IMG/VR virus record: IMGVR_UViG_3300012988_000001
Coordinates: 186,001 to 250,000 of that record
Strand: one strand, 5' to 3'
Length of the DNA stretch: 64,000 nt
Shown here: positions 1 to 64,000 of the stretch, one piece after another
Layout of the letters: each line of letters starts with the position of its first letter
How positions within the stretch are numbered: position 1 is the first letter of the stretch
The notes under the pieces: model-generated
The model's database searches: none
What the model was told of the DNA's origin: nothing
What the model saw: only the letters and a program-made list of their open reading frames with translations
Position numbers and translations under genes: made by a program

Positions 1-1
1 T

Positions 2-1279
2 GAACAATATGACCAACAGCTTCAAACCAACAAAGTGTTAGTGCTAAACAAGATTAATGAGCTAAAAGCTATTGATATTAGTGCGGAATTAGCATTACAT
101 GAAGAATTAGATGTGTGGTATCAATTAGAAGGTATTCTAAAACAAAATACCAGTACTAAAGTGTTCAAAACACAGACTATCAAACAAACTGAGTCTGAAT
201 TAGTACGCTTGAATGATTCCCTCACTAAAGAATACAACAAATTGAAAACAATTGAAGATAGCAAATGTCCAATGTGTGATGGTGAATTGAAAAATGACCA
301 TAATCATTCAGAAATGATTGTTAAAATAAAAGATACAATTGAGGATTTATCTTCTCAGATATTACAAGCGGAATATAACATTTCTGTTATCACTGAAGAG
401 ATTGATGACCTTGAAATTTTTGAAATGCCACCCAAACCAGTGACTAAGTACAGTACTCTAGCAGAAGCTAAACTTCATGAGCACATGTTAGCTGAGAATA
501 CAGCGAAATATGAAGCAGAAGAAGTGAATATCTATGACGAGGAACTAATCAGTACTTATACTGAGTTGGAAGGAACTGAATTGAAGGAATATGACGTAGT
601 ATTCAGTACTCATGAAGTACAGCAGCTTGAAATGAAGTATAAGTCCCTAAAGGAACAATTACAGCGTGAAGAAAGTAATGCTAACCCATATTTCGACCAA
701 ATTGAGACATTGAAGACTGATTCATTGCAGGTTGTAGACTATAGTCTATATAATGAGATGGAAAAGCTAGCTACACACCAAGATTTCTTGGTTAAGCTAT
801 TACTCAATAAAGATTCTTATGTTCGTAAGCGTATTATCGAGCAAAACATCACATTCTTGAATAGTAGATTACAATTCTACATCGAGCAATGTGACTCTGA
901 ACACTTTGTGAAGTTCATGAACGACCTAAGTGTTGAGATTACCCTAAATGATCAGTCCTATGACTACAAGCAATTGTCTCGTGGGGAGCGTACACGTGTA
1001 AACGTGGCCTTGTCATTGGCATTTAGAGACACTTATGAGTCATTATACCAAGGAATCAACCTTATCATGATTGATGAGATGATTGATGTGGGTCTAGATC
1101 CGTCTGGTATCACTCGTATGTGGACAATCTTTGCTGATTTAGCAGTAATTCAGCGTAAAAACGTCTTTGTTATCTCTCATAAAGAGGAATTACTAAGTAA
1201 GACGGACAATATCTTGAAGATTGTCAAAGAAGATGGTTTTAGTACTATCGAATATTCATCACTTGATGACATGTTTTAA
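2..1279 (+). CDS. SbcC/Rad50-like recombination ATPase (T4 gp46-like), 5' part outside window
   Basis: Frame open to window edge; CxxC zinc hook (CPMC), coiled coil, ABC signature LSRGE, Walker B IMIDE, ISH H-loop. Confidence 0.93.
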   Translation, partial: EQYDQQLQTNKVLVLNKINELKAIDISAELALHEELDVWYQLEGILKQNTSTKVFKTQTIKQTESELVRLNDSLTKEYNKLKTIEDSKCPMCDGELKNDHNHSEMIVKIKDTIEDLSSQILQAEYNISVITEEIDDLEIFEMPPKPVTKYSTLAEAKLHEHMLAENTAKYEAEEVNIYDEELISTYTELEGTELKEYDVVFSTHEVQQLEMKYKSLKEQLQREESNANPYFDQIETLKTDSLQVVDYSLYNEMEKLATHQDFLVKLLLNKDSYVRKRIIEQNITFLNSRLQFYIEQCDSEHFVKFMNDLSVEITLNDQSYDYKQLSRGERTRVNVALSLAFRDTYESLYQGINLIMIDEMIDVGLDPSGITRMWTIFADLAVIQRKNVFVISHKEELLSKTDNILKIVKEDGFSTIEYSSLDDMF

Positions 1280-1284
1280 AAACT

Positions 1285-1310
1285 AAAGGGAGCATTAGCT
1301 CCCTTTTTTT
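1285..1310. terminator. bidirectional intrinsic terminator
   Basis: AAAGGGAGC-atta-GCTCCCTTTTTTT between convergent genes. Confidence 0.85.
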
Positions 1311-1789
1311 ATATTAAGCATATCCAGCTTACCTTCTTTTATTAATTTACGAGCTTGATTGGCTCTTTTCTTAACATTACTCTCTGGAACAACGCCAAAT
1401 GACTCTAAAATGTCGCATTGTTGTTTAGCAGGTAGTGCTTTATACTTTTTAACATCAACTGATAGTGCTGTATGATGAATTACCATCTCTTCTTCAGGGA
1501 TAGATCCGTTTCTCTCTAAGTAATCTGCTAAATTTCTTAGTACTTCATAAAGTGGCTTATCAGTTAAGTGTTTCATGTACCTATTAAAGCTGTTAGTTAC
1601 TTTCCCTTCCCATGCGTTGCATTCATTTTGTAATACTTCACGACAATGCTGGTGGCCTTGGTGATAGTGATCAAGTACTGGTTTGGTAATTACTTCTTTT
1701 GTGATTGGATCTATGCCATTCTGCTTTTTCAGCAAATCGTTACGGTACTTTGCCGCATCCTTTGCATCCTTTAATCGTTTTTTACTCAT
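1295..1789 (-). CDS. recombination endonuclease VII-like (T4 gp49-like)
   Basis: LDHxH...CNAWEGK matches the Endo VII His-Me core (DH, N, E). Confidence 0.8.
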   Translation of the reverse strand: MSKKRLKDAKDAAKYRNDLLKKQNGIDPITKEVITKPVLDHYHQGHQHCREVLQNECNAWEGKVTNSFNRYMKHLTDKPLYEVLRNLADYLERNGSIPEEEMVIHHTALSVDVKKYKALPAKQQCDILESFGVVPESNVKKRANQARKLIKEGKLDMLNIKKGS

Positions 1790-1832
1790 AATAGTACTTC
1801 CTTAAAATAATTATTATGTAGTATTTACATTT

Positions 1833-1863
1833 TTGGGACAAAACCAGTTTTATGTCCTATAAT
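1833..1863 (+). promoter_or_regulatory. phage TTGGGACA-class promoter
   Basis: TTGGGACA-17nt-TATAAT; no ORF downstream. Confidence 0.8.
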
Positions 1864-1867
1864 ATAG

Positions 1868-2317
1868 TTAACCCAGTGTGGAGGCGTCAGCCTACGAATG
1901 AATCCTGATCCTATCGAAAATGTAGATGGCAGATGAGCAGACCACACGTGCGAAGTGCAGAAGAAACCCGTTAGGAGTTGGCATAGTTAATACCACCCAC
2001 GGCAATACGGCACTATAAACGAGCGTGTTAGACAGATTGACGCTTGCTAGATAGATATATGAGGGACACCTGACCACACTTGTTAAGGGAGTTCAATTTA
2101 AGGCTAGCTATAGTTGCGTCTTGAATTTGGACAACATTAAGATTCGATTGTATGGATTTTAATGTGAGCGTACTAAGACTACGACCGTTGCACATGACAG
2201 TGATAGAGAGAAACAGAGCAACCCGCTTTCGTTCTAGATTATCTAGAAATTCACTATACAATAATTCCGATGCTATCAGCGTCAAGCAATATTCAGATCC
2301 TTAATTGGGTCTTTTTT
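1868..2317 (+). ncRNA. candidate large structured non-coding RNA (or origin primer RNA)
   Basis: Own promoter and terminator, no + strand ORF of 60 aa or more, multiple nested helices and a long-range pairing. Confidence 0.6.
2295..2317 (+). terminator. intrinsic terminator
   Basis: AGATCC-ttaatt-GGGTCT then T-run. Confidence 0.65.
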
Positions 2318-2518
2318 ATTGTCTTCATTCCCCTGCGGGGGGATGAAATTGCCTCAACAAATCTCGTCAAGATATAAAGTACAATAACAATAAGTAACGA
2401 ATTGAGATAATGAATAACGAACGAAGTGAGTTATGAAGTATCGATAATTCTTAGACAATCGTAGATTGGCTAATCAAACAAGTTAGATAAGAATAAATTC
2501 CTATCAAAATTAGAATAC

Positions 2519-2541
2519 AAAAAAACCAGCTAAAAAGCTGG
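2519..2541 (-). terminator. intrinsic terminator after the frameshift extension
   Basis: Minus strand CCAGCT-tttt-AGCTGG-TTTTTTT immediately after the TAA at 2545-2543. Confidence 0.8.
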
Positions 2542-2542
2542 C

Positions 2543-2761
2543 TTATTGTTTGTTTTCTTTAGTTACCTTTTTGTTGTATGCACGAACCAGAAGATCACGT
2601 TCATTTGTAGGCATGTTAAGTAGCATCTCATAATTGGTATTAGTGATATACGCTGCTATTTCTGCAAGTGATGACTTTATCTCCTTGACATTCAGTTCCA
2701 TATCACTAATGACCTTGCTTATTTCTTCTGGCTTTGAGATGAGAAGCTGTATCCGAAAAAA
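2543..2761 (-). CDS. -1 frame extension of the gp26-like gene (gp51-like segment), 70 aa
   Basis: Open frame RIQLLISKPEEI...YEMLLNMPTNERDLLVRAYNKKVTKENKQ starts at slippery T TTT TTC and ends just before a terminator; missed by the ORF track. Confidence 0.75.
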   Translation of the reverse strand, partial: FFRIQLLISKPEEISKVISDMELNVKEIKSSLAEIAAYITNTNYEMLLNMPTNERDLLVRAYNKKVTKENKQ

Positions 2762-3594
2762 TGTGTAGGATCATATTTCAATCCAGTAATTGTCCATTCA
2801 TGCGAACACTCTGAACATTGCACATCCATTTCATGACTAATCCCAACTTCTTGGATTTTGTCAGTCTCGTCACGAACTTCTTTAAGTGTTGCTTTAGGTA
2901 GCGAACTTACCCATTCTGAAATAAATTCTTTTTCTACTACTTCTGTTCCATCAGGTGTATCAATTTTTTCAATACTATCAACAATCATATCAAAGTTTAG
3001 TTGAGTCATTGCTTCAAACACTTCTGTGAACAATTTCTTCTTCTGTTCAACAACTTCGTCCGAATCACCTTCCAACATATCAATGTATTCTGATTTCTTT
3101 TGTTCTTGGAACATACGTTGACTAAAGTCGCTATATTCATTCCATGTATAAGGTTTAAAATACACTTTTAGACCATTAGAAAGTTCTAGAGATGGTTGTT
3201 CACTAAAATAACTCATGCTATCTAGTAGTACTTGAAGATCTCGACTAAAAGCACCTTCATGACTGCAATGAGGGCAGGTTGTTTGAATTTCGTAGTCTTC
3301 TTCCTTGGATGCCACTTTAATCGCAATTAAAAGTTGCTCAACATCGTTAACATAAAGACCACCAGCATCATTAACACCCGGCACACAGTTCTCGATAACA
3401 CGAATTACGGCCTCTCCACTAATTAATGCATCAGGTGTGTTTAGCATGATCTCATCACGTGCTGCACGAGCACATACTCCAAGTTTAATTTTTTCAACAA
3501 CATCTTTATTGTACTTAATGATATTGTTAGAAGCTAGTTTTACAAAGATTTCTTCAATCTTAGTGTACTGGGCTAAAGGGTTCATCTTACTCAT
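2719..3594 (-). CDS. baseplate hub / tail assembly protein (T4 gp26-like)
   Basis: N-terminal NPLxxY, two CxxC (CPHC, CSEC), next to tape-measure-like gene. Confidence 0.7.
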   Translation of the reverse strand: MSKMNPLAQYTKIEEIFVKLASNNIIKYNKDVVEKIKLGVCARAARDEIMLNTPDALISGEAVIRVIENCVPGVNDAGGLYVNDVEQLLIAIKVASKEEDYEIQTTCPHCSHEGAFSRDLQVLLDSMSYFSEQPSLELSNGLKVYFKPYTWNEYSDFSQRMFQEQKKSEYIDMLEGDSDEVVEQKKKLFTEVFEAMTQLNFDMIVDSIEKIDTPDGTEVVEKEFISEWVSSLPKATLKEVRDETDKIQEVGISHEMDVQCSECSHEWTITGLKYDPTHFFGYSFSSQSQKK

Positions 3595-3608
3595 AGGGAC
3601 TCCATATA

Positions 3609-3615
3609 ATAAATA
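3609..3615 (+). promoter_or_regulatory. T4-like late promoter
   Basis: ATAAATA upstream of tape-measure-like gene. Confidence 0.55.
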
Positions 3616-3629
3616 ATTCTATATAATTT

Positions 3630-3637
3630 TATTTATA
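3630..3637 (-). promoter_or_regulatory. T4-like late promoter
   Basis: TATAAATA on minus strand upstream of gp26-like gene. Confidence 0.65.
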
Positions 3638-3641
3638 AGGA

Positions 3642-5861
3642 ATGTATATGGCAATTGATAACAGTTTCCTTCTTCAACAAATATTGACGGAGCAAACGAA
3701 AAGTAATGATAATATGTCTGCCATGCGTGAAATTTTAGCTGATAGCTTAAAAGTTCAAATCCAGATTGCCAAGAAACAAAGTGGCGGCAGCGGAAACGGA
3801 AATGGTGGTAATCCACCACGGACGGATGGCAATGGCAACCCAGATAGACGAAGAAGACCCCCAGCAAATGCTGGGAAAGATATCTTTAAAAATCTCTTCA
3901 AGGAAATGAATAATTTCACCAGAACAACCATTGGGAATAATGCCACAGCAGCGAACGTAGTAGGCTCTCTAGGGACTTCTGTATCATCAGTGGCTGGTTC
4001 TCTAAAAATGATTCCCGGCCCCGTAGGGCTTGCGGCAAACGCATTCTCGATGATCGTTGATGCGGGTATGGCTGTCTATAACTATATGAATGAACAACTC
4101 CAGATGTATAACCAGCTAAACAGTGCAGGTTTGACATTGCGTGATGGTATGCTAACTGCACGTGCTGCAAGTTCCAAATCATTTATGAGTCTAAACGAAT
4201 TTAGTTCAGCCTTAGAGAAGAACAGCGGTGCATTAGCAGCGATGGATGGTCAGTATGGTGATGGTGTACAATACTTCTCACAACTAATGGGTTCTGTCAC
4301 CGAGTTACAACGTGTAAATGGCCTTTATGGTGTATCTCAACAACAATTAGCAGATCTTGCAGCTAAAAACTTCAAATACAATAAACTATATTCTTCACAA
4401 GATGCATTGCGTAGTATAAACCAACAGCAAAGTACTACAGAATTTGTAACACAAATGACATATCTAAGTAAAACTGTCGGTAAGTCAGTCGATGAGCTAT
4501 TGGGTAAATTTGATTCTATGGGCGACACACTTGATAGTACTGTATCACAATTTGCAATGACTGATAACTGGGGTGTAGATCCAGATAAAGCAGCGGAAGT
4601 GACTAAATCTATGAATAGTGTTTATTCTAGTATGGGTGAAACCGGAGCAATACTTCAAAAGATTAACGCATCTAGATTATCATTATTCTCATTACCAGAT
4701 GAGTATAATAACAACTTTATGCAAAGTTATGCTGATATGATGGAACAATTACAACGGGAAGGTGTAACTGATGCCAAAGAAATTCGTGAACGTATGCATA
4801 ATTTCACAGTTCAGCACCAAGATCAATTGGAACAAGAATTAATAGCACAACAACGTAGTGGAAATATTCAAGCAGCAGCGTTATTGACACAAATTAGAAA
4901 CCAAGAAAAACTCTTCAATGAAAGCAACACTAAAACTAATGCACAACTTGAAGCATATACAAATAATTTCAATATATGGATTAGTAAAACATTTACTCAA
5001 CCATTTAATGAAATGTATACCAAAATGCAATTGGGTGCTATGAAGTACTTAAGTGATCTAGCAGATCGTAGTGATGGTGCATTTGACTTTTTAGCTAATA
5101 TGGCAACTGATGCATACAAATATTTCAACGATAATGTGATTGGAATGTTTGGAGTACTAACTGATTTACCGGGTCAATTGGGTTCATTAATATTTGGTGA
5201 ACAATTTGACAATGTTAAAGCTGCATATAATGACTTTATGGGTGATTTGGTGCAAATTCCTGCTCGTTTAGGTTCATTAGTATGGGATTGGCTAACTGGT
5301 AGTGATATGTCTAAATCCAAAGAACAATTAAAAGGTACAGTTGATAATATTTTTGCAGATTATGATAAATTCTGGAAAAGTATTGGAGATATGAAGTTTA
5401 ATTATGATGATATGAAGACTAGAATTTCAGATGCATTCAATAGTATGAAGAAATCAATAGCTGGCTGGTGGGATACTGCGAAGGGATGGTTTAGTAGTGA
5501 TGATCCAGTACCTGCTGAAGCGAAACAAACTTCAAAAAACGGCGTCCCGGCGACAATAAATACAAATACTAATCAGGTACAACAACAGGCACAGGTTATT
5601 GCACAAAATAAACCTCAAGCTCCCCCAGTGGTAGCCGAACCGCCTAGTAAAATGCCCGAACGTATTTCAGAAGAAGCTAAAAAGAAAGATGACCAACCGA
5701 CAAATCCTATACAACCACCATTGGTAAATTACGATGAGTCAATCCTAGCAACATTAAAAGCTATATCTGGATCTTTAGATTCTAATAATAGTAATACTCA
5801 ACAGCTAGCTCAACTTCTTCGTCAAATTTCGGAGAACACCGAAGCACAACGCCAAACTTAA
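3642..5861 (+). CDS. tape-measure / baseplate hub protein (gp29-like)
   Basis: 739 aa helical, Ala/Gln/Ser-rich, periodic W/F in C-terminal half; beside gp26-like and portal genes. Confidence 0.6.
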   Translation: MYMAIDNSFLLQQILTEQTKSNDNMSAMREILADSLKVQIQIAKKQSGGSGNGNGGNPPRTDGNGNPDRRRRPPANAGKDIFKNLFKEMNNFTRTTIGNNATAANVVGSLGTSVSSVAGSLKMIPGPVGLAANAFSMIVDAGMAVYNYMNEQLQMYNQLNSAGLTLRDGMLTARAASSKSFMSLNEFSSALEKNSGALAAMDGQYGDGVQYFSQLMGSVTELQRVNGLYGVSQQQLADLAAKNFKYNKLYSSQDALRSINQQQSTTEFVTQMTYLSKTVGKSVDELLGKFDSMGDTLDSTVSQFAMTDNWGVDPDKAAEVTKSMNSVYSSMGETGAILQKINASRLSLFSLPDEYNNNFMQSYADMMEQLQREGVTDAKEIRERMHNFTVQHQDQLEQELIAQQRSGNIQAAALLTQIRNQEKLFNESNTKTNAQLEAYTNNFNIWISKTFTQPFNEMYTKMQLGAMKYLSDLADRSDGAFDFLANMATDAYKYFNDNVIGMFGVLTDLPGQLGSLIFGEQFDNVKAAYNDFMGDLVQIPARLGSLVWDWLTGSDMSKSKEQLKGTVDNIFADYDKFWKSIGDMKFNYDDMKTRISDAFNSMKKSIAGWWDTAKGWFSSDDPVPAEAKQTSKNGVPATINTNTNQVQQQAQVIAQNKPQAPPVVAEPPSKMPERISEEAKKKDDQPTNPIQPPLVNYDESILATLKAISGSLDSNNSNTQQLAQLLRQISENTEAQRQT

Positions 5862-5876
5862 TTGGAGAATTAATTA

Positions 5877-7622
5877 ATGAGTTGGACTAAATTTATGACA
5901 ACAGCGAGGTCGAAAGTATCGACCTCCAAAATAGAGCAAAGCAAAAGTCCTTCAAAGACAACTGGCTCTAAGTCGAATTACGCGTCATATTTGCCAGTAG
6001 TATATACTGGCTTATCTAACCGTACTGATCGATACAGACAATATGAACAAATGGACCAAGATCCTGAAATTAGAACTGCTCTTGATATTATCGCAGATTT
6101 TTGTACTCAAAGCGTTGAGGATTATGGTCTACCATTTAAAATTCGCTACAAAGATAATAGCATTGGTGATTCGGAAGTAACAACTTTAGAAGACCGTCTA
6201 GAATCATGGGCTGAACAAAATGATTTCAAAACTCGAATTTATGAAATTGTACGTGGACTTCTTAAGTACGGCGATCAATTCTTTATTCGTGACCCAGAAA
6301 CAATGGAATGGATTTGGGTATCACCTGCAAACGTAGAAGGTGTATTCGTCAACGAAGAAACTGGTAAAAATCCAGTTGCTTACTTTATTCGTGACGTTTC
6401 TTATAATATGCAGGATAAAATTTTCACAAACCTTCAAATAGGATATGACAAAATGGCATATCCGGGTACTATGCCAAACGCATTAGCAGGTTCTGCTAGT
6501 CAATTTGGTGGTATCGGTGGTGGTTATGCTAATGCTAGTAATGCTAACAGTGCAGACCCATTTAGTATGGCTGCTGGACGTAAAGATGTTATTCCAGTTG
6601 CAGCAGAACACGTTGTTCACTTAACTTTAAATACCGGACAAGACCCAGTATGGCCTTTCGGTACTAGTATTCTTGAATATATCTTTAAAGTATATAAACA
6701 AAAAGAATTACTAGAAGACAGTATCATCATTTATCGTGTACAACGTGCTCCAGAGCGTCGTGTATTCAAAATTGATGTTGGTGAAATGCAAACTCACCAA
6801 GCAATGGCATATGTTGAACGTTTCAAAAACGAAATCCACCAGCGTCGTATACCTTCTAATAAAGGTGGCAGTACTTCACTAATGGATGCAGCATATAACC
6901 CACTTAGTATTTTAGAAGACTATTTCTTCCCTCAAAGTTCTGAAGGTCGTGGTAGTTCTGTAGAAACATTACCGGGTGGTGATAACTTAGGTCAGATTGA
7001 CGACTTGCGTTATTTTAACAACAAATTAATTCGTGGTCTACAAATTCCAGCATCTTATCTTCCACAAGGTCCAGATGATGGTGGTGTAGCGTTATTTGGT
7101 GATGGTGCGACACAAGCTATGGCTAGTGAATTGCGTTTCAATAACCAATGTCAACGTTATCAACGTTTAATTGCGAAAGTATTTGATATGGAATTTAAAC
7201 GCTTCATGGTTAAAAGCGGTTATAGTATTAGTGCTTCATCCTTTGAAGTAATCTTCAATCCACCAATTAACTTTGCTTCTTATCGTAAAGCAGAATTGGA
7301 TGCGAAACTTATTAATACTTACATGCCACTTGATAGCTTAAGTTATATGTCTAAACAAACCATCCTTAAGAAAATGGGATTCGAACAAAGCGATATCGTA
7401 GAGAACGAACAAAATTGGCTCAAGGAAAATCCAGATGCAATGGAAAAACAAGCTGCTTCTGATGAAGCTGGATTACAATCTGTCGGTATTGATGCACCTA
7501 ACGATCCGGGTATGGATTTAGGCATGGATGAAGACGGTAATATGGAAAGTGCTGATAAAGAGTTCCAAGATATGGTTGGAAACAATGATTTTAACCCGAA
7601 TAATTTAGGTTCTTCTTTCTAA
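5877..7622 (+). CDS. portal protein (T4 gp20-like)
   Basis: LEDSIIIYRVQRAPERRVFKIDVG, EDYFFP, GSSVETLPGG, IDDLRYF motifs. Confidence 0.96.
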   Translation: MSWTKFMTTARSKVSTSKIEQSKSPSKTTGSKSNYASYLPVVYTGLSNRTDRYRQYEQMDQDPEIRTALDIIADFCTQSVEDYGLPFKIRYKDNSIGDSEVTTLEDRLESWAEQNDFKTRIYEIVRGLLKYGDQFFIRDPETMEWIWVSPANVEGVFVNEETGKNPVAYFIRDVSYNMQDKIFTNLQIGYDKMAYPGTMPNALAGSASQFGGIGGGYANASNANSADPFSMAAGRKDVIPVAAEHVVHLTLNTGQDPVWPFGTSILEYIFKVYKQKELLEDSIIIYRVQRAPERRVFKIDVGEMQTHQAMAYVERFKNEIHQRRIPSNKGGSTSLMDAAYNPLSILEDYFFPQSSEGRGSSVETLPGGDNLGQIDDLRYFNNKLIRGLQIPASYLPQGPDDGGVALFGDGATQAMASELRFNNQCQRYQRLIAKVFDMEFKRFMVKSGYSISASSFEVIFNPPINFASYRKAELDAKLINTYMPLDSLSYMSKQTILKKMGFEQSDIVENEQNWLKENPDAMEKQAASDEAGLQSVGIDAPNDPGMDLGMDEDGNMESADKEFQDMVGNNDFNPNNLGSSF

Positions 7623-7685
7623 GACTAAATAACAATGATTAATTCACTTCTCGTACCGGGAAGTGAATACATCAGGAGAATGTAT

Positions 7686-7925
7686 ATGTTAAACGAACTA
7701 TTTGAATCAAGAAATGATTCAATGTACGACCCAGAAGACGATCAAACAGTGTATAAACTAACTGATACTCGTAAACCAAAATTAACTTTGAAAGTACTAA
7801 ACAATTTACGTAAGTACCGTGAATTTAAAGCTAATGAAGTTGAAAAACGAGCACAGGTAGTGGCTGTAGTTTATGCCAAACCCGCTGATGATGCTGGCGG
7901 TGGTGATATGGGCGGCTTAATGTAG
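7686..7925 (+). CDS. small prohead-associated protein
   Basis: AGGAG SD favours start at MLNELFES; between portal and core genes. Confidence 0.6.
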   Translation: MLNELFESRNDSMYDPEDDQTVYKLTDTRKPKLTLKVLNNLRKYREFKANEVEKRAQVVAVVYAKPADDAGGGDMGGLM

Positions 7926-7971
7926 AAAATTCCGCTTTTAAAGCTCTTTTTGAAAGAGGAATTTTAGTACT

Positions 7972-7979
7972 TATAAATA
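7972..7979 (+). promoter_or_regulatory. T4-like late promoter
   Basis: TATAAATA. Confidence 0.7.
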
Positions 7980-8025
7980 ATAGCATACTTAATTTAAAAA
8001 ATTTGTATATCTTTTGGAGGATATA

Positions 8026-8889
8026 ATGGCTAACAAAAAACTATTGCAAGAAGCTATTCAGGCTTTTGCTAACAACGAACAAGATCTTGCTGCTAAGAAA
8101 ATGCGTAAGTATTTCCTAGAAGCTGCACAAGAGATCAATAAAGAACTCGAAGAAGCTATGGAAGAAGAAGATTGTGATCTATCTGAAGCTGACGAAGTTG
8201 AAGATGAAGAAGTAATTGAAGAAGATTTCAATACTGACCCATCACAAGGTTTAACTGGTGAAATCCAATATGATCTATCTGAAGAAGATGAATCAGAAGA
8301 AGAAGTTGCTGAATTTGGTGCGGAAGATGGTGCTGATGGTGATGACTCTGAATTCGGTGCTGAAGAAGAAGTATCTGGTGATGTACCAAGTGGTGACGAA
8401 TGGGAATCTATCAAGGATGCATTTGCTGACCTAGAAGACCTATTTGACCGTATCGGCGGTGAAGAAGATTTTGATGTTGATGCAGAATCTGACGGCCTAG
8501 GTGATGGCGAAGAAGAAGTTGATTTCGACATGGATAAAGATGGCGAAGATGAATTTGCTGATGTAAGTTTCGGTGACGAAAAAGTTGGCGAAGGTTATAA
8601 AATGAAATCTGTTGCTAAACCATCTAACACTGCTGAAAAATCTAAATCTCCAGTTGCATCTAACGCTAAATCTCCAGTAGACGGCGTAGCACCTGTTAAG
8701 ATCAAAGACGGTACTGTTACCCTAAATGATGGTGACAAACTCAAAAATAAAGATGCGGAAACTGCTAAAGTTGACGACATGAACAACGTAATGGACAGTG
8801 CTAAAGGCATGATGAAAGACGCGAAAAAGCCTACTAATAAAGCTGAAAAATCCCGTTCTCCACTACCGAAAAACGCACCTAAATTTTAA
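8026..8889 (+). CDS. highly acidic prohead core/scaffold protein
   Basis: GGAGG SD before ATG 8026; D/E-rich middle, basic C-terminus; head gene cluster. Confidence 0.65.
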   Translation: MANKKLLQEAIQAFANNEQDLAAKKMRKYFLEAAQEINKELEEAMEEEDCDLSEADEVEDEEVIEEDFNTDPSQGLTGEIQYDLSEEDESEEEVAEFGAEDGADGDDSEFGAEEEVSGDVPSGDEWESIKDAFADLEDLFDRIGGEEDFDVDAESDGLGDGEEEVDFDMDKDGEDEFADVSFGDEKVGEGYKMKSVAKPSNTAEKSKSPVASNAKSPVDGVAPVKIKDGTVTLNDGDKLKNKDAETAKVDDMNNVMDSAKGMMKDAKKPTNKAEKSRSPLPKNAPKF

Positions 8890-8923
8890 TCATAAATAAA
8901 CAAAAGAAAGGAGATCATTAACT

Positions 8924-9547
8924 ATGAGTATGATACGTGAGTGGTCTTCATTCAATGATTCTAAAATTGTACTAGAACACCGTGATAACCCGTTTGGTGG
9001 TAAAGATTGTTACCTTCGTGGTATTTCAATCCAAGCTGACCAACGTAATAAAAACGAACGCATCTACCCATTTGCAGAAATTGCACATGCGGTAGAGAAT
9101 ATGAATCAACGCTTAATGAGTGGTGAGAGCATTCTTTGTGAATGTGATCACCCTGAAACCTTAACCATTAACTTAGACCGTGTAGCAGCAATGATTACTA
9201 AAGTCTGGATGGAAGGTAAAAACGGTATGGCTGAAATCAAGCTACTACCAACATCTCATGGCGAGAATATTCGCAAGATGATCGAAAGCGGTGTGAAATT
9301 AGGTGTTAGTTCTCGTGGTTCAGGTAACGTTGATCATAATGGCATTGTTTCTGATTTTGAAATCGTAACTATTGACATTGTAGCACAACCAAGTGCTCCA
9401 GATGCGTATCCTACTGCGGTATTTGAATCTCTTATGAGTAAGTACGGTTCACCTCTTAGTGGAAGTAAAAAAGCAATAGTGGAATCTAAATCATCAAATG
9501 GTGTAGAAAACGAAATTCACGCTTTTTTTAAGAAATTAAAAGGCTAA
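8924..9547 (+). CDS. prohead protease (T4 gp21-like)
   Basis: N+NERIYP, CECDHP, LGVSSRGSG, DIVAQPSAPDA. Confidence 0.95.
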   Translation: MSMIREWSSFNDSKIVLEHRDNPFGGKDCYLRGISIQADQRNKNERIYPFAEIAHAVENMNQRLMSGESILCECDHPETLTINLDRVAAMITKVWMEGKNGMAEIKLLPTSHGENIRKMIESGVKLGVSSRGSGNVDHNGIVSDFEIVTIDIVAQPSAPDAYPTAVFESLMSKYGSPLSGSKKAIVESKSSNGVENEIHAFFKKLKG

Positions 9548-9558
9548 CAAAAAAAATT

Positions 9559-9566
9559 TATAAATA
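9559..9566 (+). promoter_or_regulatory. T4-like late promoter
   Basis: TATAAATA. Confidence 0.7.
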
Positions 9567-9614
9567 TTTGTACATCAAAAGTGCAAATATTAATGTACTT
9601 TACAGGAGAATATA

Positions 9615-10733
9615 ATGTCTAAATTAGATAAGTTTCTAAATGAATCATCTCTTTCTGATGAAGCGAAACAGCTAATTCAGGAAGCATGGAATGAAGAAAA
9701 ACAAGCAGTCGCTGCTGAAATGCGTGAGGAAATGAAAGGTCGTTATCAAGAAGACCTAGCAAAACTCACAGAAGGGCTAGATAAAATGGTTACTCAAGTA
9801 ATTTCGGAAGAAATGAACGCAGTATATGACGAAAAAGCAAAACTCGTTGAAGACCGTGTTACTCTACGTAAAACCCTTGGCAACTTCGGTGCATTCGCTA
9901 ACGGCGTTCTAGCAGAAGAAGTTAAACAAATGCGTAATGAGCGTAAGCTCGTTAAAGAAAGTCTAGATAAATTCGCAGGGTTCTCTAACCGTATCCTAGC
10001 AGAAGAACTAAAAGACTTCCACCAAGAAAAACGTCAACTAGTTGAAACCCGCGTTAAACTAATTGCACAAGGTGCTCAACAAATTAATGAAGCTAAACAG
10101 CGTGTCATTAATCGTATCACTGAAACTTCCGCTCAATATATTGCTGAGACAACTCACAATAACCTAAAAGAGCTAAAGACAGAACTACGTGAAGCCCGTC
10201 AGAATATGTTTGGTCGTAAAATTTTCGAAGCCTTTGCTAACGAATTCTATAACAACCAATACAAAGAGAACTCAATCCTACGTTCTCTAAATGAATCTAT
10301 TAAACAGAAAGAATCTGAAGTAATTAGCATGAAAATGAAACTTCAAGAATCCGAAACTAAAGTAGAAGAAGCAAATACCAAAATGCGTATCATGGAAGAT
10401 ACACAAGCTCGTACTGCTATTATCTCCGAACTAGTTAAACCTCTTACTGTTCAACAGAAGCAAATCATGGAATCTCTACTTCAAGCTACCCCAACGGATA
10501 AACTTGACGCTGATTTCAGAAAGTACCATAAGTCAGTACTTAAAGGTACTATCAATGAGTCTGCTGCTAAAACCAGCCGCCCGGCAGTTAATACACAGGC
10601 AAAAAATACACTCACTGAAGGTAAAGTCGTAACTGGCAACCGTGATGGTATTCTTAAAGAAAGTGAACTCGATTCCGACGACCTAGATTTCCTAAAATCA
10701 CTAGAACGGAACGCAGGAATCCACAAAAAATAA
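9615..10733 (+). CDS. prohead core scaffold (T4 gp22-like)
   Basis: Long coiled coil between protease and capsid genes; FGRKIFEAF motif. Confidence 0.8.
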   Translation: MSKLDKFLNESSLSDEAKQLIQEAWNEEKQAVAAEMREEMKGRYQEDLAKLTEGLDKMVTQVISEEMNAVYDEKAKLVEDRVTLRKTLGNFGAFANGVLAEEVKQMRNERKLVKESLDKFAGFSNRILAEELKDFHQEKRQLVETRVKLIAQGAQQINEAKQRVINRITETSAQYIAETTHNNLKELKTELREARQNMFGRKIFEAFANEFYNNQYKENSILRSLNESIKQKESEVISMKMKLQESETKVEEANTKMRIMEDTQARTAIISELVKPLTVQQKQIMESLLQATPTDKLDADFRKYHKSVLKGTINESAAKTSRPAVNTQAKNTLTEGKVVTGNRDGILKESELDSDDLDFLKSLERNAGIHKK

Positions 10734-10761
10734 ACATTTTTAATAAGCAATTTTTTTCAGT

Positions 10762-10769
10762 GATAAATA
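10762..10769 (+). promoter_or_regulatory. T4-like late promoter
   Basis: GATAAATA upstream of capsid gene. Confidence 0.65.
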
Positions 10770-10813
10770 ATAACATACTGAAAAACGAAAAAACATCTTG
10801 AAGGAGATATATA

Positions 10814-11989
10814 ATGTCACAACTATTAACTGAATCTAAATGGGCTGCGGTTAAAGAGAAACTTGTTGAAGGTCTAAAAGACAATCGCAAAACCGTTATG
10901 GAAGCTGTTCTAGAAAACCACCGCAAAGTAATGCTACGTGAAAGTGCTTCACAAGGTGCTACCTCTGCTGGTAACATCGCAACGCTAAACAAGGTAATCC
11001 TACCTATTATGCGTCGTGTAATGCCTACCGTTATCGCTAACGAAATCATCGGTGTTCAACCTATGACTGGCCCTGTTGGTCAAATCCACACTCTACGTGT
11101 TCAATATGCTGACAACGCACCGGGCGTAATCGCTGGTGAAGAAGCACTATCACCGTACAAAATCGCAAAATCTTATACTGGTGAAGTAAACTCTGATAAC
11201 GATAATCCACGTGCTGCACCTACTAGCCAACTAGAAGGTACTATGGGTCGTCGCGTCAACATCCGTATCCTACGTGAAACCGTTGAAGCGAAATCTCGTC
11301 GTCTATCTGCTCGCTGGACCGTTGAATCTGCACAAGACGCTCAATCCCAACACGGTATCGACGTTGAAGCAGAACTAATGGCTGCTATCGCACAAGAAGT
11401 TACTACTGAAATCGACCAAGAACTACTTCACAAACTACGTGCTCTACCGGGTGCTGCTGCTGTAACTTATGACCAATCTAAAGTTACTGGTGTTGCTACC
11501 TTCGTTGGTGACGAACACGCCGCTCTAGCTACCCTAATTAACCGTCAAGCAAACGAAGTTGCTCGTCGTACCAAACGTGGTGCTGCTAACTGGGCTGTTG
11601 TTTCCCCAACTGCACTAACCATTCTTCAATCTGCTACTACTTCTAGCTTCGCTCGTACTACTGAAGGTACTTTCGATGCACCAACTAACGTTAAATTTGT
11701 TGGCGTACTAAACAGTACTATGAAGATCTACGTAGACACCTATGCTGATGATAGCACAGATGTATTGATCGGTTACAAAGGTAACGCAGAAACTGATGCT
11801 GGTGTATTCTATTGCCCATACATCCCACTAATGGCGTCTGGTACTGTAATGGACCCTAACACTGGGGAACTCGTTACAACGTTTCTTACAAGATATGGCT
11901 ACGTTCAACTTACCGATAGTACTTCATCTCTTGGTAACGCTGCTGACTACTTCAGCAAAATTGCAATCCGCAACGTAACCTTCATGTAA
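10814..11989 (+). CDS. major capsid protein (T4 gp23-like)
   Basis: RRVMPTVIANEIIGVQPMTGPVGQI, VEAKSRRLSARWT, YCPYIPL, TRYG; strong codon bias. Confidence 0.97.
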   Translation: MSQLLTESKWAAVKEKLVEGLKDNRKTVMEAVLENHRKVMLRESASQGATSAGNIATLNKVILPIMRRVMPTVIANEIIGVQPMTGPVGQIHTLRVQYADNAPGVIAGEEALSPYKIAKSYTGEVNSDNDNPRAAPTSQLEGTMGRRVNIRILRETVEAKSRRLSARWTVESAQDAQSQHGIDVEAELMAAIAQEVTTEIDQELLHKLRALPGAAAVTYDQSKVTGVATFVGDEHAALATLINRQANEVARRTKRGAANWAVVSPTALTILQSATTSSFARTTEGTFDAPTNVKFVGVLNSTMKIYVDTYADDSTDVLIGYKGNAETDAGVFYCPYIPLMASGTVMDPNTGELVTTFLTRYGYVQLTDSTSSLGNAADYFSKIAIRNVTFM

Positions 11990-12034
11990 TTGAAGTTGAA
12001 CTAAGTTAGATTCAAAAATTTAATAAAAACATTT

Positions 12035-12064
12035 AAGGGACTCTTGACGAGTCCCTTTTCTTTT
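12035..12064 (+). terminator. intrinsic terminator after capsid gene
   Basis: AAGGGACTC-ttgac-GAGTCCCTTTT. Confidence 0.85.
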
Positions 12065-12072
12065 GCTATAAT
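12044..12072 (+). promoter_or_regulatory. sigma70-type promoter
   Basis: TTGACG-17nt-TATAAT with extended -10 TG. Confidence 0.75.
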
Positions 12073-12099
12073 TTTATTATTATTGACGAGGAAACCAAA

Positions 12100-13011
12100 A
12101 TGAATGCCAATGAACACAATTTTATTAATCGCGTCAACGCAAAGTATGGTGAAGGTAAGTACTCATTTGACAAAATGACATACATCAACGCACACACCAA
12201 AGTAGAACTGTTTTGTGCGAATGGAAACCATTACTTCACAATCGCTCCGATGCATATGGTATCAAAAAGTTCCAAAGGCTGCAATATTTGTCAGAAAAAC
12301 ACACCATACAGTACTGAAGAATTTGTAGCAAAAATATCAAAAATGCATCCGACGCTAACCTTTGAAAAAACCGTTTACAAAAAACAGAGGGAAGGAAATG
12401 TGATTGTAACGTGCCATGCAGATCCTGATAATGTTCACGATTGGGAAGTTGCCGCCCAAACACTACTTAAGGGTAACATATCATGTGGAATATGCACAGG
12501 CCGCAAACGCCGCACAAAAAATCAATTCATTTCTGAAGCCAAAAAGATTCATGGTAATAAGTATGATTACTCTAAAGTTGACTATGCAAATAGTGAAACC
12601 TATGTGACTATTACTTGCCCCGATGATGGTGATTTTCGCCAGCAACCAAAGGCACATATTTCAGGTCGTGGTTGTCCAAAATGTGGTAAGTATGGCTATC
12701 AGCCAAGTAAACCGGGATATTTCTACGTACAGAAATTGGTATCTGCTGATAAAGTACTGTACAAGTACGGAATTACTGGTGATATGGATCGTAGGATTAC
12801 AGAACAATCACGAAATTCGGTTTTCAAACACACTATTTTAGTAGAAAGGTACTTTGAAGATGGTAAAAAGCCTTTAGTACTTGAAAAGTTCCTAAAAACA
12901 TACATTGAAAGTGGCATTGCTACACCAGATGAGTTACAATCTGGATTTACAGAGACATTTGACGAGAAATACTTGTCATTAGTTTTAGAAATCGTAAATA
13001 ATTTCAAATAG
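12100..13011 (+). mobile_element. free-standing homing endonuclease (Zn-ribbon repeats plus GIY-YIG-like domain)
   Basis: Three repeats of type YDYSKVDY...ITCP...H..G.GCPKC; C-terminal FYV...YKYGIT..MDRR. Confidence 0.8.
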
Positions 13012-13036
13012 CCCCTATAAAGAGGATAAAAAGAAT

Positions 13037-13441: not shown

Positions 13442-13447
13442 TAAATA
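13440..13447 (+). promoter_or_regulatory. T4-like late promoter with RBS-occluding hairpin
   Basis: GATAAATA followed by CCTCC-N7-GGAGG. Confidence 0.65.
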
Positions 13448-13469
13448 CCTCCAATGATAGGAGGAATAT

Positions 13470-13778: not shown

Positions 13779-13784
13779 TAAATA
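13778..13784 (+). promoter_or_regulatory. T4-like late promoter
   Basis: ATAAATA upstream of tail fibre gene. Confidence 0.55.
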
Positions 13785-13816
13785 TCATTATAGTATACAC
13801 ATAAAAGGATTTATAA

Positions 13817-15924: not shown

Positions 15925-15928
15925 AAAC

Positions 15929-15959
15929 TTGGGACAGAAAACACTTCATGTGATATAAT
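15929..15959 (+). promoter_or_regulatory. phage TTGGGACA-class promoter
   Basis: TTGGGACA...TGTGATATAAT. Confidence 0.85.
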
Positions 15960-15961
15960 AG

Positions 15962-15998: not shown

Positions 15999-16014
15999 TA
16001 TATGGAGAAACACA

Positions 16015-51096: not shown

Positions 51097-51371
<275 letters not shown>

Positions 51372-52138: not shown

Positions 52139-52140
<2 letters not shown>
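52111..52140. terminator. bidirectional terminator
   Basis: A-run GGAGGC-atgt-GCCTCC T-run. Confidence 0.85.
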
Positions 52141-53551
<1,411 letters not shown>

Positions 53552-58322: not shown

Positions 58323-60482
<2,160 letters not shown>

Positions 60483-60483
<1 letters not shown>

Positions 60484-63197
60484 TGCCTAGTAAAAGTAAA
60501 GCACAAGCTAGGTTCTTTGCAGCGGCAGCACACAACCCAGACTTTGCTAAGAAAGCTGGTGTTAGTACTAAAGCTGCTAAAGAATGGAACCAAGCAGACA
60601 AGAAAGCAGGAACTCTTAAAAAGGGTTCTAAGAAACCTGAACATGTGAAAGAAGAAGTTCTTGATGAAGAACTATTAGATGAAGCTAGTGGGGTTGGTAA
60701 TTTCCCAGTACCGCCAAGTTCTCTTAAGCTAATGCAAAAATATGCATCTTCAATTGTGTTGACATATGCTTATAAATCATTTCAACAGATGCAACAGAAT
60801 ACAGATGATGAAGTAGATCAATTGGCTGCGAAAAAGGTTCTTCCGTTTCTAAAACGTTTCCAACAGAAATACGGTGCTCAAGTACTAAACGATAATAGTA
60901 TGCGTAAGTATGTGAACCAAAGTATTAGTATGCCAATCGACCATGCAGCTATTTTCCGGGAACTACCAAAATCACTACAGAATGACATGGTTAAAGTTCT
61001 AATTGAAAAGATGCGTGTATTCGTAACATTCGACGCAAAATATTATAACAGCCGTGCTGGTGGTCATGCTAAGAAGATTAACAACACTACTAGTGAAATT
61101 GTTCTTGCTCTACGTCCTCAGTACTTCACATTTTCTTCAACATCCGGTACTGATGGCCTCGATGCAACAATGGAACGTATGGATTATTTCATGGGTTCTC
61201 TCGAACACGAAATGCAACACGCATTCCAAGAAATTGTCACTTCTCAAGTTAGTTCTCGTAAAGATAAGAATATTGAGATGAAGAAAGACTACGGGGATAT
61301 GGGTGATGCTTATCACGCAAGTGGGGTTGAATTTGGTCCTCAGACAAAAGACATGATTAACGCTGGTATTTTGTGGTTAGATAACCAGAAAGACCGTGGA
61401 GAATTAAGTGGTAATGCCAACAGTGATATTAAAGCTGCTATCCAACATGCATTCAAACGTTTAGAACATGGTCAAGGTAAAGTATATCAGGCTCTTAAGA
61501 ATTACAAAGAAGATGCTAATGCTAAAAAGCACATGACTCTAATCTTTAAAGGTCTTATGAAGCACTACCAAGAAATGGAAAATGAAGTTGATTCTGAGTT
61601 GGATTTAGATCCAAAAGAAGTTGACGGTGGTGAATCCCGTCTGTATCATTCCACTTCTAATGGTCCTGATGCAGATTACGAAAGTGATGATCCGATGGTT
61701 CAGATTTATCGTGCTATGGAATCCAAGAACGGTCTTAAACCATATCACGTAGAAGAAGAACGCGAACATGGTGCACCCCGTGATGATTTTGCTAACCCAT
61801 ATAACAAAATGGCATCAATGGTGTATGCATTGCGTGATGGTGGATCAGTTCGTTTCATGAAGTACAGAGGTAATATTCGAGTTGACGCGTATCGTGATGG
61901 TAAAAGTCCTTCACGTGAAGAAGGTGATTGGTTCGAAGAAGAAATAACACAAGAACTACTACCCCAAGCATTGGAAAATATGACTTCGTTCCGTTCATAT
62001 AATACAATTGAGTACTTCTTCGAAGATATTAAGCATAAAGCTAGCCAAATGGACCTAGAAGATATGGCAACTGCTTTCCCCAAATGGTTTGAAGCTGCTA
62101 AAGAGTTCTCTGGTGTTGACGACCCAAATAAGAAACTATCTTATGATTTTGATGAAGGTACTTTATTCTTTAGATTTGCTGGTGCTCGTGGTTCATGGTA
62201 TATCCAAGATGCACATGATGGTAAATGTGTACTAGAAGATAACGAAACTTATGAACGTAAGGGTTATATCAAATATGACGAAGTAGAAGATGTAATGACA
62301 TTGTTATTCGCCATCTATCAAATGGCTACCGACCGTCAAATCAATCGTGTAATGAAAAATATCAACGAATTGAATATTACTGTTGACTCGTTATCAAATA
62401 CATGGGAATATGTACAAGAATCATCTAAAGCACCAGTTGAAGAATCTTCAATGCGTGGTATGATGGATTTAGTACAAGATGCTGAAATTGCAGATGGTAT
62501 AGATCAAGCAAATAAAAGTACTGATGTTGCTAGAATGGCACAGAAGAAAAAAGATGATAGAATGAATTCATTAAATCAGCTAGGTGAAGAAGAAGAGTTT
62601 GATTTACAGGGTAAGCCTGTTAAACCCGGACAAAAATCAGCAGATGTACATGCTGGTACAAGTACTGAACGTGAGGTTAAACTAGACGAAATGCCAATGC
62701 GATTTGATTCATTCCAAGGCCAAAATGCTGATGAGTTCGTTGACAAAACAGCAGAAATGACAGGTAAAGCAAATCTAGTTCCATTCTCTGAACACGATAC
62801 TTTCACTGTAATGCGTAACAAGAGTTACACTGGTTTTATCGCATTTGATAAACAAGGTAAACAAATTGCAGTTGTAAGTGGTCACCTTTCGGATGATGCA
62901 GTACTTGGTGTTAAGAACGTATTTGAAATTGCGGCGACGGCATCTAAATCAACAGTGAAAGGTGTTATGTATCAAATCTTCATGGATATGACTAAAGCTG
63001 GGATTTCAATACTAAGTGATAAATTACATACAGATAGTGCTATAAAATTCTGGACTCGTCTAATCGGTTCGAATGAAGTATATATCGTAGGTGGTGGTGA
63101 AGTTCTTGCAAAAGCTACACCAGAGAAAATCCACAAATACTGGAGCGATGATGAAAACAGCCCAAGTGCTGAACTTCAACTGCTTCTCGTGGGCTAA
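60483..63197 (+). CDS. multidomain (polyvalent) protein: HExxH domain plus C-terminal GNAT-like domain
   Basis: HEMQH plus YH.SGVE; KGVMYQIF...ILSDKLHTDSAIKFW. Confidence 0.7.
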
Positions 63198-63216
63198 AAT
63201 TGAAAAGATAAATATT

Positions 63217-63253
63217 ATCGGAAGCATCCCTGTGATGTTTCCGATATTTTTTT
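63217..63253 (+). terminator. intrinsic terminator
   Basis: ATCGGAAGCATC / GATGTTTCCGAT then T7. Confidence 0.8.
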
Positions 63254-63282
63254 GAGACAAAGAAGCAAAAATGTGATATAAT
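63252..63282 (+). promoter_or_regulatory. phage TTGGGACA-class promoter
   Basis: TTGAGACA...TGTGATATAAT. Confidence 0.8.
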
Positions 63283-63320
63283 AATATGGCAAAGAAACAA
63301 AGAGACAAAGGACTGTAACA

Positions 63321-64000
63321 ATGACCAAACAAAAGAAATCCTCATCCGTGCTTTCTGAACATGACGTTCAGCGACTAAACGACTATCAACATGCTCGCAT
63401 CCGTACTGAAATGTACTTAGGTTCACGTTCTGTTCATGAACACCAAGTAGTTCTTTTCGGAGAAGAAGGTTACAATGTTCAGAATCTAGAATGGGTTCCA
63501 GCATTGATTACTGCATTCCGTGAGATCATTGATAACTCCCTTGATGAGTTTAAAAAAGCTGGAACGAAAGATCCAGTACTAAAGATTGATTACAACGAAG
63601 AAGATTTATCATTTAGTATTAGTGATAACGGTCGTGGTATTCCAATCGATTACGTACCAGAGTTTGATGTACACTTGTGTACTATGGTACTAACAGAGAC
63701 TAAGACAGGTCGTAACTTTGACGATTCAAAACGCGAAGGTACTATCGGTCAGAACGGTCTAGGTGGTTCCATTACAATGTGCGTTAGTTCTAAAGCAGAA
63801 CTAGAGATTCACCGTGCGGGTCGCCCGTACAAAACAGTAGCATCTAACGATGGCTATGATGGTATCTATAAGTTCACACAGAAGTTTAAAGAAGGCACAA
63901 TCCTTTTCCCTGAACTAGATATTCAAGAACCTAACATTCGTAAGGTTCAAGCGGATAAAACTGGAACTTCTATTAGCTTCACGCTAAGTCCTGAAGTATT
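63321..64000 (+). CDS. type II topoisomerase ATPase subunit (T4 gp39/GyrB-like), truncated by window end
   Basis: R.EMYLGS, EIIDNSLDE, DNGRGIP, GRNFDD, GQNGLG. Confidence 0.95.
   Translation, partial: MTKQKKSSSVLSEHDVQRLNDYQHARIRTEMYLGSRSVHEHQVVLFGEEGYNVQNLEWVPALITAFREIIDNSLDEFKKAGTKDPVLKIDYNEEDLSFSISDNGRGIPIDYVPEFDVHLCTMVLTETKTGRNFDDSKREGTIGQNGLGGSITMCVSSKAELEIHRAGRPYKTVASNDGYDGIYKFTQKFKEGTILFPELDIQEPNIRKVQADKTGTSISFTLSPEV

Follow-up and report, generated by a model that had tools for sequence, protein, structure and literature searches.

Why should a phage genome carry one short palindrome many times more often than expected, when phage genomes are textbook cases of palindrome avoidance? 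The question is raised by a 64,000-nucleotide stretch of DNA (hereafter the window; bases 186001–250000 of IMG/VR virus record IMGVR_UViG_3300012988_000001, which is 366,160 bp long and has terminal repeats), in which the hexamer AGTACT occurs 119 times. The note that first drew attention to it (the original prediction) had counted about 115 copies by eye, close to the result of our sequence search, and had suggested a positively selected site for a phage protein; the GC content that it gave, about 35%, was too low, the measured value being 37.7%. Judged by DNA and protein similarity, the phage is a Rak2-like jumbo myovirus. We propose that AGTACT has been selected as the recognition site of a factor that is peculiar to the clade, marks the phage DNA and acts at early promoters, a reading to which we would assign a probability of roughly 0.45. 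AGTACT would then be a cis-element of duplex DNA under positive selection and confined to enterobacterial Rak2-like jumbo phages.

Excess, symmetry and conservation of AGTACT

None of 100 dinucleotide-preserving shuffles of the window reached the observed count (mean 18.8, standard deviation 4.0, maximum 29), and by composition AGTACT was the most over-represented of all 4096 hexamers in the window (5.6-fold). Genome-wide, there are 910 copies where some 120 would be expected, and no other 6-bp palindrome exceeds 227. Over-representation amounted to 7- to 11-fold in each reading frame and in non-coding DNA as well, with densities of 3.4 sites per kb in non-coding versus 2.4 per kb in coding DNA of the genome. 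The window sites divide into the frames AGT-ACT (57), xxA-GTA-CTx (44) and xAG-TAC-Txx (15), 109 of them lying in plus-strand and 7 in minus-strand genes, and three are non-coding (1793, 7966 and 37859). This agrees with the predicted occurrence in all three frames, on both coding strands and between genes; the two intergenic examples cited at the time, 1794 and 7967, are the sites with starts at 1793 and 7966.

Codon preference, which the original prediction had named as the explanation that would refute it, does not suffice to explain these numbers. Synonymous-codon shuffling within the 71 complete genes of the window (528 genes, making up 88% of the 366-kb genome, were called overall) yielded 27.7 ± 4.7 sites, with a maximum of 42 in 300 shuffles, versus 110 observed; for the coding DNA of the genome, the same procedure gave 214 ± 13 versus 765 (z = 43), and codon permutation gave 137 ± 11.5. 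When all hexamers of the genome's coding DNA were ranked under synonymous shuffling, AGTACT came first (z = 47.5). A dicodon-Markov expectation was likewise surpassed in the genome, about 1.7-fold in each of the two frames that extend over three codons (271 and 163 observed, 434 in total, versus 160 and 100 expected, 259 in total); the AGT-ACT frame is unsuited to this test because a dicodon-preserving shuffle keeps it by construction. Ser-Thr pairs are written AGT-ACT in 331 of 630 cases (93 expected), the reverse codon pair ACT-AGT is found 35 times versus 66 expected, and the Ser-Thr dipeptide itself is 1.4-fold in excess (630 versus 448 expected), Thr-Ser not being over-represented. The AGTACT excess is thus not a matter of codon or dipeptide preference.

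It is, moreover, a property of the full hexamer and not of GTAC generally. On the coding strand AGTACT was enriched 3.6-fold, its one-off variants AGTACA and TGTACT 1.7- and 1.6-fold and AGTACG 1.5-fold; other GTAC contexts were close to 1 or at zero, with GGTACC and CGTACG essentially absent. A longer motif could be rejected, as beyond the hexamer there is just a weak bias towards C or A before and G or T after it, the least favoured neighbours being G before and C after (the latter at 0.74 times background). Partial words that are reverse complements of each other were equally enriched on the coding strand (CAGTAC 2.8 and GTACTG 2.3; AAGTAC 2.1 and GTACTT 2.3), and this strand symmetry points to recognition of duplex DNA rather than to an mRNA signal. 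Window sites occur throughout, at 3–12 per 4 kb and with a mean gap of 537 bp. Their spacing is near Poisson and slightly more even than chance (coefficient of variation 0.83 in the mid-genome, per-gene dispersion 0.83), and all genes of at least 1.5 kb hold at least one site. Regular spacing or helical phasing was therefore rejected, the standouts among the gaps being the 20–23 bp promoter pairs alone (see below).

The sites are also conserved beyond the level of the codons that compose them. In the comparison with Salmonella phage Munch, codons within sites were retained at higher rates than identical codons outside sites: GTA 80% versus 54.5% (p = 2e-9), TAC 81% versus 46% (p = 1e-8), ACT 79% versus 60% (p = 2e-6) and AGT 91% versus 77% (p = 2.5e-5). 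Whole AGTACT hexamers were kept in 50–57% of cases, versus 28–29% for all hexamers in the same frame. Comparisons with Hallingskeid, 121Q, GAP32 and RaK2 went in the same direction, if more weakly, and the analysis was also made for the window alone. Duplex symmetry, site conservation and independence of codon bias fit the positively selected site that had been proposed; the part of that proposal concerned with a binding, marking or modifying protein did not lead to an identified protein.

In the first half of the window (1–32 kb), the sites start at positions 152, 452, 551, 605, 1241, 1539, 1674, 1793, 3227, 4431, 4536, 5044, 5153, 6870, 7793, 7966, 10535, 11714, 11918, 12158, 12310, 12753, 12876, 13197, 13315, 13563, 13856, 14256, 14824, 15023, 15717, 16891, 17398, 17604, 17683, 18785, 19232, 19357, 19752, 20945, 21362, 22204, 22509, 23403, 24569, 24803, 25143, 25363, 26358, 27309, 28050, 28363, 28664, 30201, 30548 and 31399; in the second half (32–64 kb), they start at 32267, 32741, 33068, 33476, 33791, 33826, 34348, 34889, 35078, 35517, 36112, 37859, 38604, 40310, 40622, 41264, 42084, 42267, 42326, 43209, 43450, 44023, 44322, 44697, 45712, 46311, 46612, 46801, 48193, 48291, 49231, 50207, 50958, 51921, 52563, 52580, 53377, 53855, 54385, 54506, 54734, 55223, 55276, 55700, 55862, 56228, 56927, 57632, 57977, 58004, 58497, 58812, 58980, 59304, 59832, 60564, 60881, 61120, 62011, 62517, 62661, 62900 and 63575. 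The non-coding site at 1793–1798 precedes the minus-strand gene 1295–1789 (a recombination endonuclease in the Munch annotation), with 3 bp separating it from the gene's start. The one at 37859–37864 is outside our gene calls, and Munch has a small minus-strand coding sequence in the corresponding region, so that this site may be coding. Two sites 17 bp apart (52563–52585), in the frames xxA-GTA-CTx and AGT-ACT, are found inside the minus-strand gene 52139–52792, which belongs to a virion structural protein family.

A trait of one phage clade, with paired boxes in early promoters

The closest cultured relatives of the phage are the Salmonella phages Munch, 7t3, SE_PL and PHA46 and the Klebsiella phage fENko-Kae01 (about 83% DNA identity in the polymerase region), followed at greater distance by the 121Q/PBECO4, GAP32/CBB, Hallingskeid and RaK2 lineages. 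All eight other phages of this clade that were tested are rich in AGTACT: Munch has 850 copies, 121Q 903, RaK2 937, GAP32 1011, XbC2 1105, CBB 1235, Hallingskeid 1313 and XaC1 1356. The count is 81 in a 349-kb Vibrio relative, more distant and equal in GC content, which lacks the excess as well as any palindrome avoidance; other relatives have 18 (Pseudomonas phi30-2), 0 (Xanthomonas XacN1) and 25 (Agrobacterium Atu_ph07). Six unrelated phages of E. coli or Salmonella (T4, T5, rV5, FelixO1, SPN3US and N4) have 0–29 each. As AGTACT is enriched in every enterobacterial Rak2-like phage tested but not in unrelated phages that share these hosts, it is with the phage clade and not with the host that the trait goes. 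The chromosome of E. coli K-12 contains 400 copies in 4.64 Mb (0.086 per kb, or one per 11.6 kb), versus 2.49 per kb (one per ~400 bp) in the phage, a 29-fold difference. The searchable literature on this phage group held no description of an AGTACT or ScaI trait; a text match to ‘SCAI’ in a RaK2 paper referred to culture medium, not the enzyme.

Other palindromes, by contrast, are avoided to an extreme degree in these genomes. In the 366 kb, 23 of the 64 possible 6-bp palindromes have zero copies, and words missing from the window include AAGCTT, CCCGGG, CAGCTG, CTGCAG, CCATGG, AGGCCT, GGTACC, CGTACG and the tetramer GCGC. The latter is absent from the whole genome (290–490 copies expected) and from six clade genomes; the Vibrio relative has 545. 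The AGTACT trait arose along with the loss of at least 20 GC-containing 6-bp palindromes and of every GCGC. The Type IIS sites CGTCTC, GAGACC and CTCCTC are likewise absent.

One functional context of AGTACT, unforeseen by the original prediction, lies outside the window in the early region, where intergenic sites are paired within sigma-70-type promoters. Box 1 overlaps or abuts the -35 element (AGTAC-TTGACA or AGTAC-TTGCAT), and box 2 ends one base before TATAAT or two (GG) before CATAAT. The distance from box to box, 20–23 bp, varies with the promoter spacer, so that each box keeps to the promoter element next to it. This arrangement, with its position fixed relative to -35 and -10, was found across several genera, namely in this genome and in Munch, 121Q, RaK2 and Hallingskeid. 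Non-coding AGTACT density in the early region rises to as much as 12 per kb. This region of small genes, at genome positions 1,100–18,000 and 365,300–366,160, holds repeated cassettes consisting of an A-tract, AGTACT, TTGACA or TTGCAT, a spacer, AGTACT and TATAAT.

Late promoters were considered as a further context and rejected. The non-coding site at 7966–7971, upstream of gene 8014–8889, abuts the T4-type late-promoter-like sequence TATAAATA (7972–7979), but just 1 of 11 copies of TATAAATA in this genome shows such an arrangement and none does in four relatives, so that this juxtaposition is probably incidental. As a separate observation, TAAATA and TATTTA are strongly depleted in genes of the genome (49 versus 207 and 21 versus 155 in synonymous shuffles), which fits avoidance of T4-type late-promoter sequences in coding regions.

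How might a site of this kind be used? Its likeliest reader would be a phage-encoded symmetric DNA-binding protein, dimeric and resembling either a restriction enzyme or a small regulator, that is made early or delivered with the virion. Such a factor may bind both promoter boxes and modulate host RNA polymerase at early promoters, shut-off being the likelier effect because the boxes sit under the polymerase footprint. Since the 910 sites of the phage genome outnumber the 400 of the entire E. coli chromosome more than twofold, whatever reads them would act almost wholly on phage DNA, and AGTACT could provide a sequence-based self tag with which to protect, organise or selectively use that DNA. 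Selection would act on site density and be opposed by coding constraint, which would explain the near-random, slightly even spacing and the lack of long site-free genes. According to the literature, a relative of these phages forms no phage nucleus, and the DNA of relatives is cut normally by many restriction enzymes. It is conceivable, though we consider it doubtful, that these phages, lacking both a nucleus and wholesale base modification, tell their own DNA from that of the host by sequence alone, by means of a dedicated factor that reads the roughly 1000 AGTACT copies and also times the early promoters.

Search for a reader and rival explanations

Five enriched genomes have 186 proteins in common, 55 of which are absent from the Vibrio, Pseudomonas and XacN1 relatives. 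The 55 include a Dam-family methyltransferase, two HNH proteins and an anaerobic ribonucleotide reductase, as well as several small conserved proteins without recognisable domain and several virion structural proteins whose genes lie between those for replication in the window. Clade-specific core proteins are encoded, among other places, at window 51138–51371 and at genome 41469–42550 (a further protein together with the Dam-family enzyme), 45887–46618, 105439–106790 (an operon with an HNH protein as its last member) and 125280–125522. DNA-binding domains did not turn up in some 55 family scans made on the clade-specific core proteins, several of them in both Pfam and PHROGs. The RE_ScaI family (PF09569) had no match at E ≤ 1 in the 366-kb genome. 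The N6_N4 methyltransferase family (PF01555) is absent in this genome, Munch, 121Q, Hallingskeid and RaK2 and present just in GAP32 and CBB, and neither C5- nor D12-class methyltransferases were found in this genome or Munch. The C5 enzyme of 121Q, GAP32, CBB, Hallingskeid and RaK2 cannot be the cause of the trait because it is missing from this genome and Munch. With regard to this enzyme (~290 amino acids), we observed that CCWGG has 3 copies in the two genomes without it versus 228–438 in its carriers, and AAGCTT 0 versus 47–93; it looks as if sequence avoidance of these words replaced the lost methylase.

Individual nucleases were examined as possible readers. A PD-(D/E)XK protein of 190 amino acids (genome 320987–321559), occurring in 72 phage records with invariant E60, D94, E103 and K105, gave a structural model with a predicted local distance difference test (pLDDT) value of 89.6, which in structural comparison came closest to Hjc resolvases (Z 8.1) and to the homing endonuclease I-Ssp6803I (Z 7.9). 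Its records are those of the jumbo phages of this group plus the non-enriched Vibrio jumbo phage, which encodes a 35%-identical homologue, and the protein thus does not track the AGTACT trait. The plus-strand window gene 45422–46129, labelled ‘type II restriction endonuclease’ in Munch, in fact belongs to PDDEXK_1 and is an MGME1/Cas4-like exonuclease. A possible LlaJI-like protein of 904 amino acids (window 60483–63197) was dismissed, its RE_LlaJI match (E = 0.01) falling below the cut-off and PHROGs assigning it to a virion structural protein family. Further window proteins with such virion structural matches lie among the genes for replication and nucleotide metabolism (42030–42431, 42456–43391, 44394–45038, 45048–45374, 52139–52792 and 58891–60483); all of the seven are clade-specific save 58891–60483, and three combine small size with unusually strong conservation. 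The group may consist of internal proteins that accompany the DNA.

Several points weigh against a selected recognition site with a dedicated factor. The search just described yielded no reader, and most of the 55 clade-confined core proteins have no recognisable domain. Targets of this kind, 6-bp palindromes that are nearly indifferent to their flanks, are commoner among restriction-modification enzymes than among regulators. The promoter boxes make up about 20–40 of some 900 sites per genome, so that the link from a promoter role to the genome-wide excess is an assumption, and a general pressure could have carried the boxes along as passengers. A drive by biased repair would likewise be expected to leave sites conserved above background. 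Finally, of the statistical checks that had been called for, the codon-aware shuffles left the excess standing, but a maximal-order Markov model (AGTAC × GTACT / GTAC) nearly reaches the count, predicting 226 versus 238 two-strand counts in the window and 825 versus 910 in the genome. The near-match arises from the large share that AGTACT itself has in these words, one third of GTAC and half of AGTAC occurrences, by which the model absorbs the signal; synergy between the half-sites (about 2-fold) accordingly rests on the codon-aware table.

Among the rival explanations, the one that survives best, although we deem it unlikely, regards AGTACT as the target of a phage methyltransferase: the Dam-family N6-adenine enzyme of the clade would methylate the A of the site, and selection would be for the epigenetic mark. 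The mark would shield some 900 sites from restriction of the ScaI/Eco255I type and act as a self tag or as an early-promoter switch, parental DNA being fully methylated and newly made DNA not. A suitable enzyme of 178 amino acids is indeed encoded at genome 42014–42550 (PF05869, E = 4e-28, NPPY motif). Present in the five ingroup genomes, and thus in all AGTACT-rich genomes tested for it, and absent from the Vibrio, Pseudomonas and XacN1 outgroups, it is the sole DNA methyltransferase conserved across the clade; a genome purged of 23 palindromes yet endowed with 910 ScaI-type sites would, moreover, plausibly need protection. Protection, however, accounts for tolerance of the site and not for a 7-fold excess. 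Characterised members of the PF05869 Dam family are known as GATC enzymes, which speaks against AGTACT as the target. The palindrome spectrum fits GATC methylation as well, TGATCA (whose cutter is blocked by Dam methylation) being at a normal level and GGATCC and CGATCG being absent, and RaK2 DNA has been reported to behave as Dam-methylated (PMC3622015). Enzymes of the N4-cytosine, C5-cytosine and D12 classes were not found in this genome or Munch. The palindrome spectrum and the published RaK2 digests together suggest that the Dam-family enzyme of the clade is a GATC methylase.

Rather improbable, in our view, is a molecular drive in which sequence-specific repair or gene conversion, by a very-short-patch-like nuclease or biased mismatch correction, turns near-cognate sequences into AGTACT and restores mutated sites without any adaptation. 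It would be in line with the density peaks where constraint is lowest, that is, in intergenic DNA and the early small-gene region (up to 12 per kb), with the nearly Poisson spacing, and with moderate enrichment of the one-off variants AGTACA/TGTACT and AGCACT/AGTGCT. The clade also has conserved nucleases to offer, namely the two HNH proteins (genome 106146–106790 and 334179–335156) and the above PD-(D/E)XK protein. Yet no single-mismatch neighbour is clearly depleted, unlike the situation for CTWGG under Vsr repair: AGTATT stands at 223 versus 216 and AATACT at 156 versus 194. A Vsr-like footprint was rejected on this account, these two words not being depleted as required and a C5 methyltransferase being absent in this genome. 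The force would also have to be strong enough to lift the Ser-Thr dipeptide 1.4-fold, and fixed placement in early promoters across genera suggests use, not drift.

Still less probable is that AGTACT is a palindromic counterpart of Chi, at which a processive helicase-nuclease, either of the host or made by the phage for destruction of host DNA, is attenuated, so that phage DNA, its sites being readable from either direction, is spared and host DNA, with one site per 11.6 kb, is degraded. As with short Chi sequences, we are dealing with an exact short oligomer in all frames, without flank requirement and of similar density; the 29-fold density contrast with E. coli would serve such a purpose, and the window encodes UvrD/Pif1-like helicases and a RecB/Cas4-like PD-(D/E)XK nuclease. 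These genomes have in addition accumulated the E. coli Chi octamer GCTGGTGG (57 copies versus ~3.4 expected, about 17-fold), and thus do exploit signals of this sort. The idea is nevertheless an analogy only; a helicase-nuclease with a recognisable recognition module was not identified, and the paired early-promoter boxes are left unexplained. As to the octamer itself, copies of GCTGGTGG are found in the window at 1648, 5464, 25490, 41109 and 61056 on the plus strand and at 3359, 6836 and 38859 on the minus strand; 12 in the same orientation occupy the first 18 kb of the genome, some within early-promoter spacers, and all enriched relatives have 18–54 each, the Pseudomonas relative 2.

A reader supplied by the Enterobacterales host, such as RNA polymerase or its alpha subunit, a nucleoid protein or the nucleoid-occlusion factor SlmA, has the poorest prospects of these mechanisms. 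In its favour, the box-bearing early promoters depend on host polymerase in its unmodified state, the hosts of the enriched clade are mostly Enterobacterales, and the SlmA site of E. coli, with its 12-bp consensus GTGAGTACTCAC, contains AGTACT. On the other hand, the six unrelated phages that share these hosts show no enrichment, and for two enriched members Xanthomonas is the reported host. SlmA sites were rejected because the flanks do not match: G before and C after the hexamer are the least favoured neighbours in the phage, GTGAGTACTCAC has no perfect copy, and GTNAGTACTNAC has 2–4 copies per genome. That the excess is an artefact of favoured codons, dipeptides or dinucleotides (GTA, ACT, AGT, TAC) can practically be dismissed: ACT, GTA and AGT are indeed common codons and the maximal-order Markov expectation comes near the count, but synonymous shuffles, hexamer ranking, codon-pair and dicodon tests refute it, the ACT-AGT control is depleted, non-coding DNA is enriched too, and the Vibrio relative of equal GC has no excess.

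Significance and comparison with known systems

A whole clade of ~350-kb phages has reversed palindrome avoidance for one hexamer while practising it to an extreme for others. A reader protein or a mark, should one exist, would amount to a novel means by which viral DNA is labelled as self. Such a reader or mark would further give a handle on early transcription in Rak2-like phages, which are under development for therapy against Klebsiella, E. coli, Salmonella and Erwinia. With about 1000 ScaI/Eco255I sites per genome, these phages must either be extremely vulnerable to this one specificity or have protection against it. The window combines the trait with a gene content of capsid, scaffold, tail-fibre, DNA polymerase, terminase, UvsX-like, primase/helicase, ribonucleotide reductase and topoisomerase functions. 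With window positions 11700–17600 as query, near-identical sequence turned up in assembled metagenome contigs from soil, plant, beetle and wastewater samples of 13 studies, which shows a wide distribution of the phage or its close kin in settings associated with plants and soil.

Known systems resemble AGTACT in part. Chi (GCTGGTGG), FtsK-orienting polar sequences (KOPS) and uptake sequences are likewise short exact words, enriched many-fold, located in genes in all frames, conserved, and marking DNA for a processing machine; they are, however, asymmetric, orientation-biased and cellular, with known readers, whereas AGTACT is a viral palindrome in phages that carry Chi separately. The target of ScaI and Eco255I is the identical 6-bp sequence, and the flank independence of AGTACT is typical of Type II enzymes, but the phage has no RE_ScaI-family protein or N4-cytosine methyltransferase, and restriction targets are normally depleted in phages. 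In SlmA sites AGTACT forms the central hexamer, the outer bases of which are absent or disfavoured in the phage. The T4 MotA box and the SPO1 TF1 sites in early promoters are promoter-embedded phage boxes and, like the paired boxes described here, short motifs at a fixed position in one temporal promoter class; they are confined to promoters, whereas AGTACT is mostly found inside genes (765 of 910 in coding DNA). Dam GATC, finally, is an epigenetic signal in P1 pac, Mu mom and IS10, a short palindrome read by its methylation state, and the phage encodes a Dam-family enzyme; GATC, unlike AGTACT, is not enriched in these genomes (961 copies versus 1275 expected in the present one).

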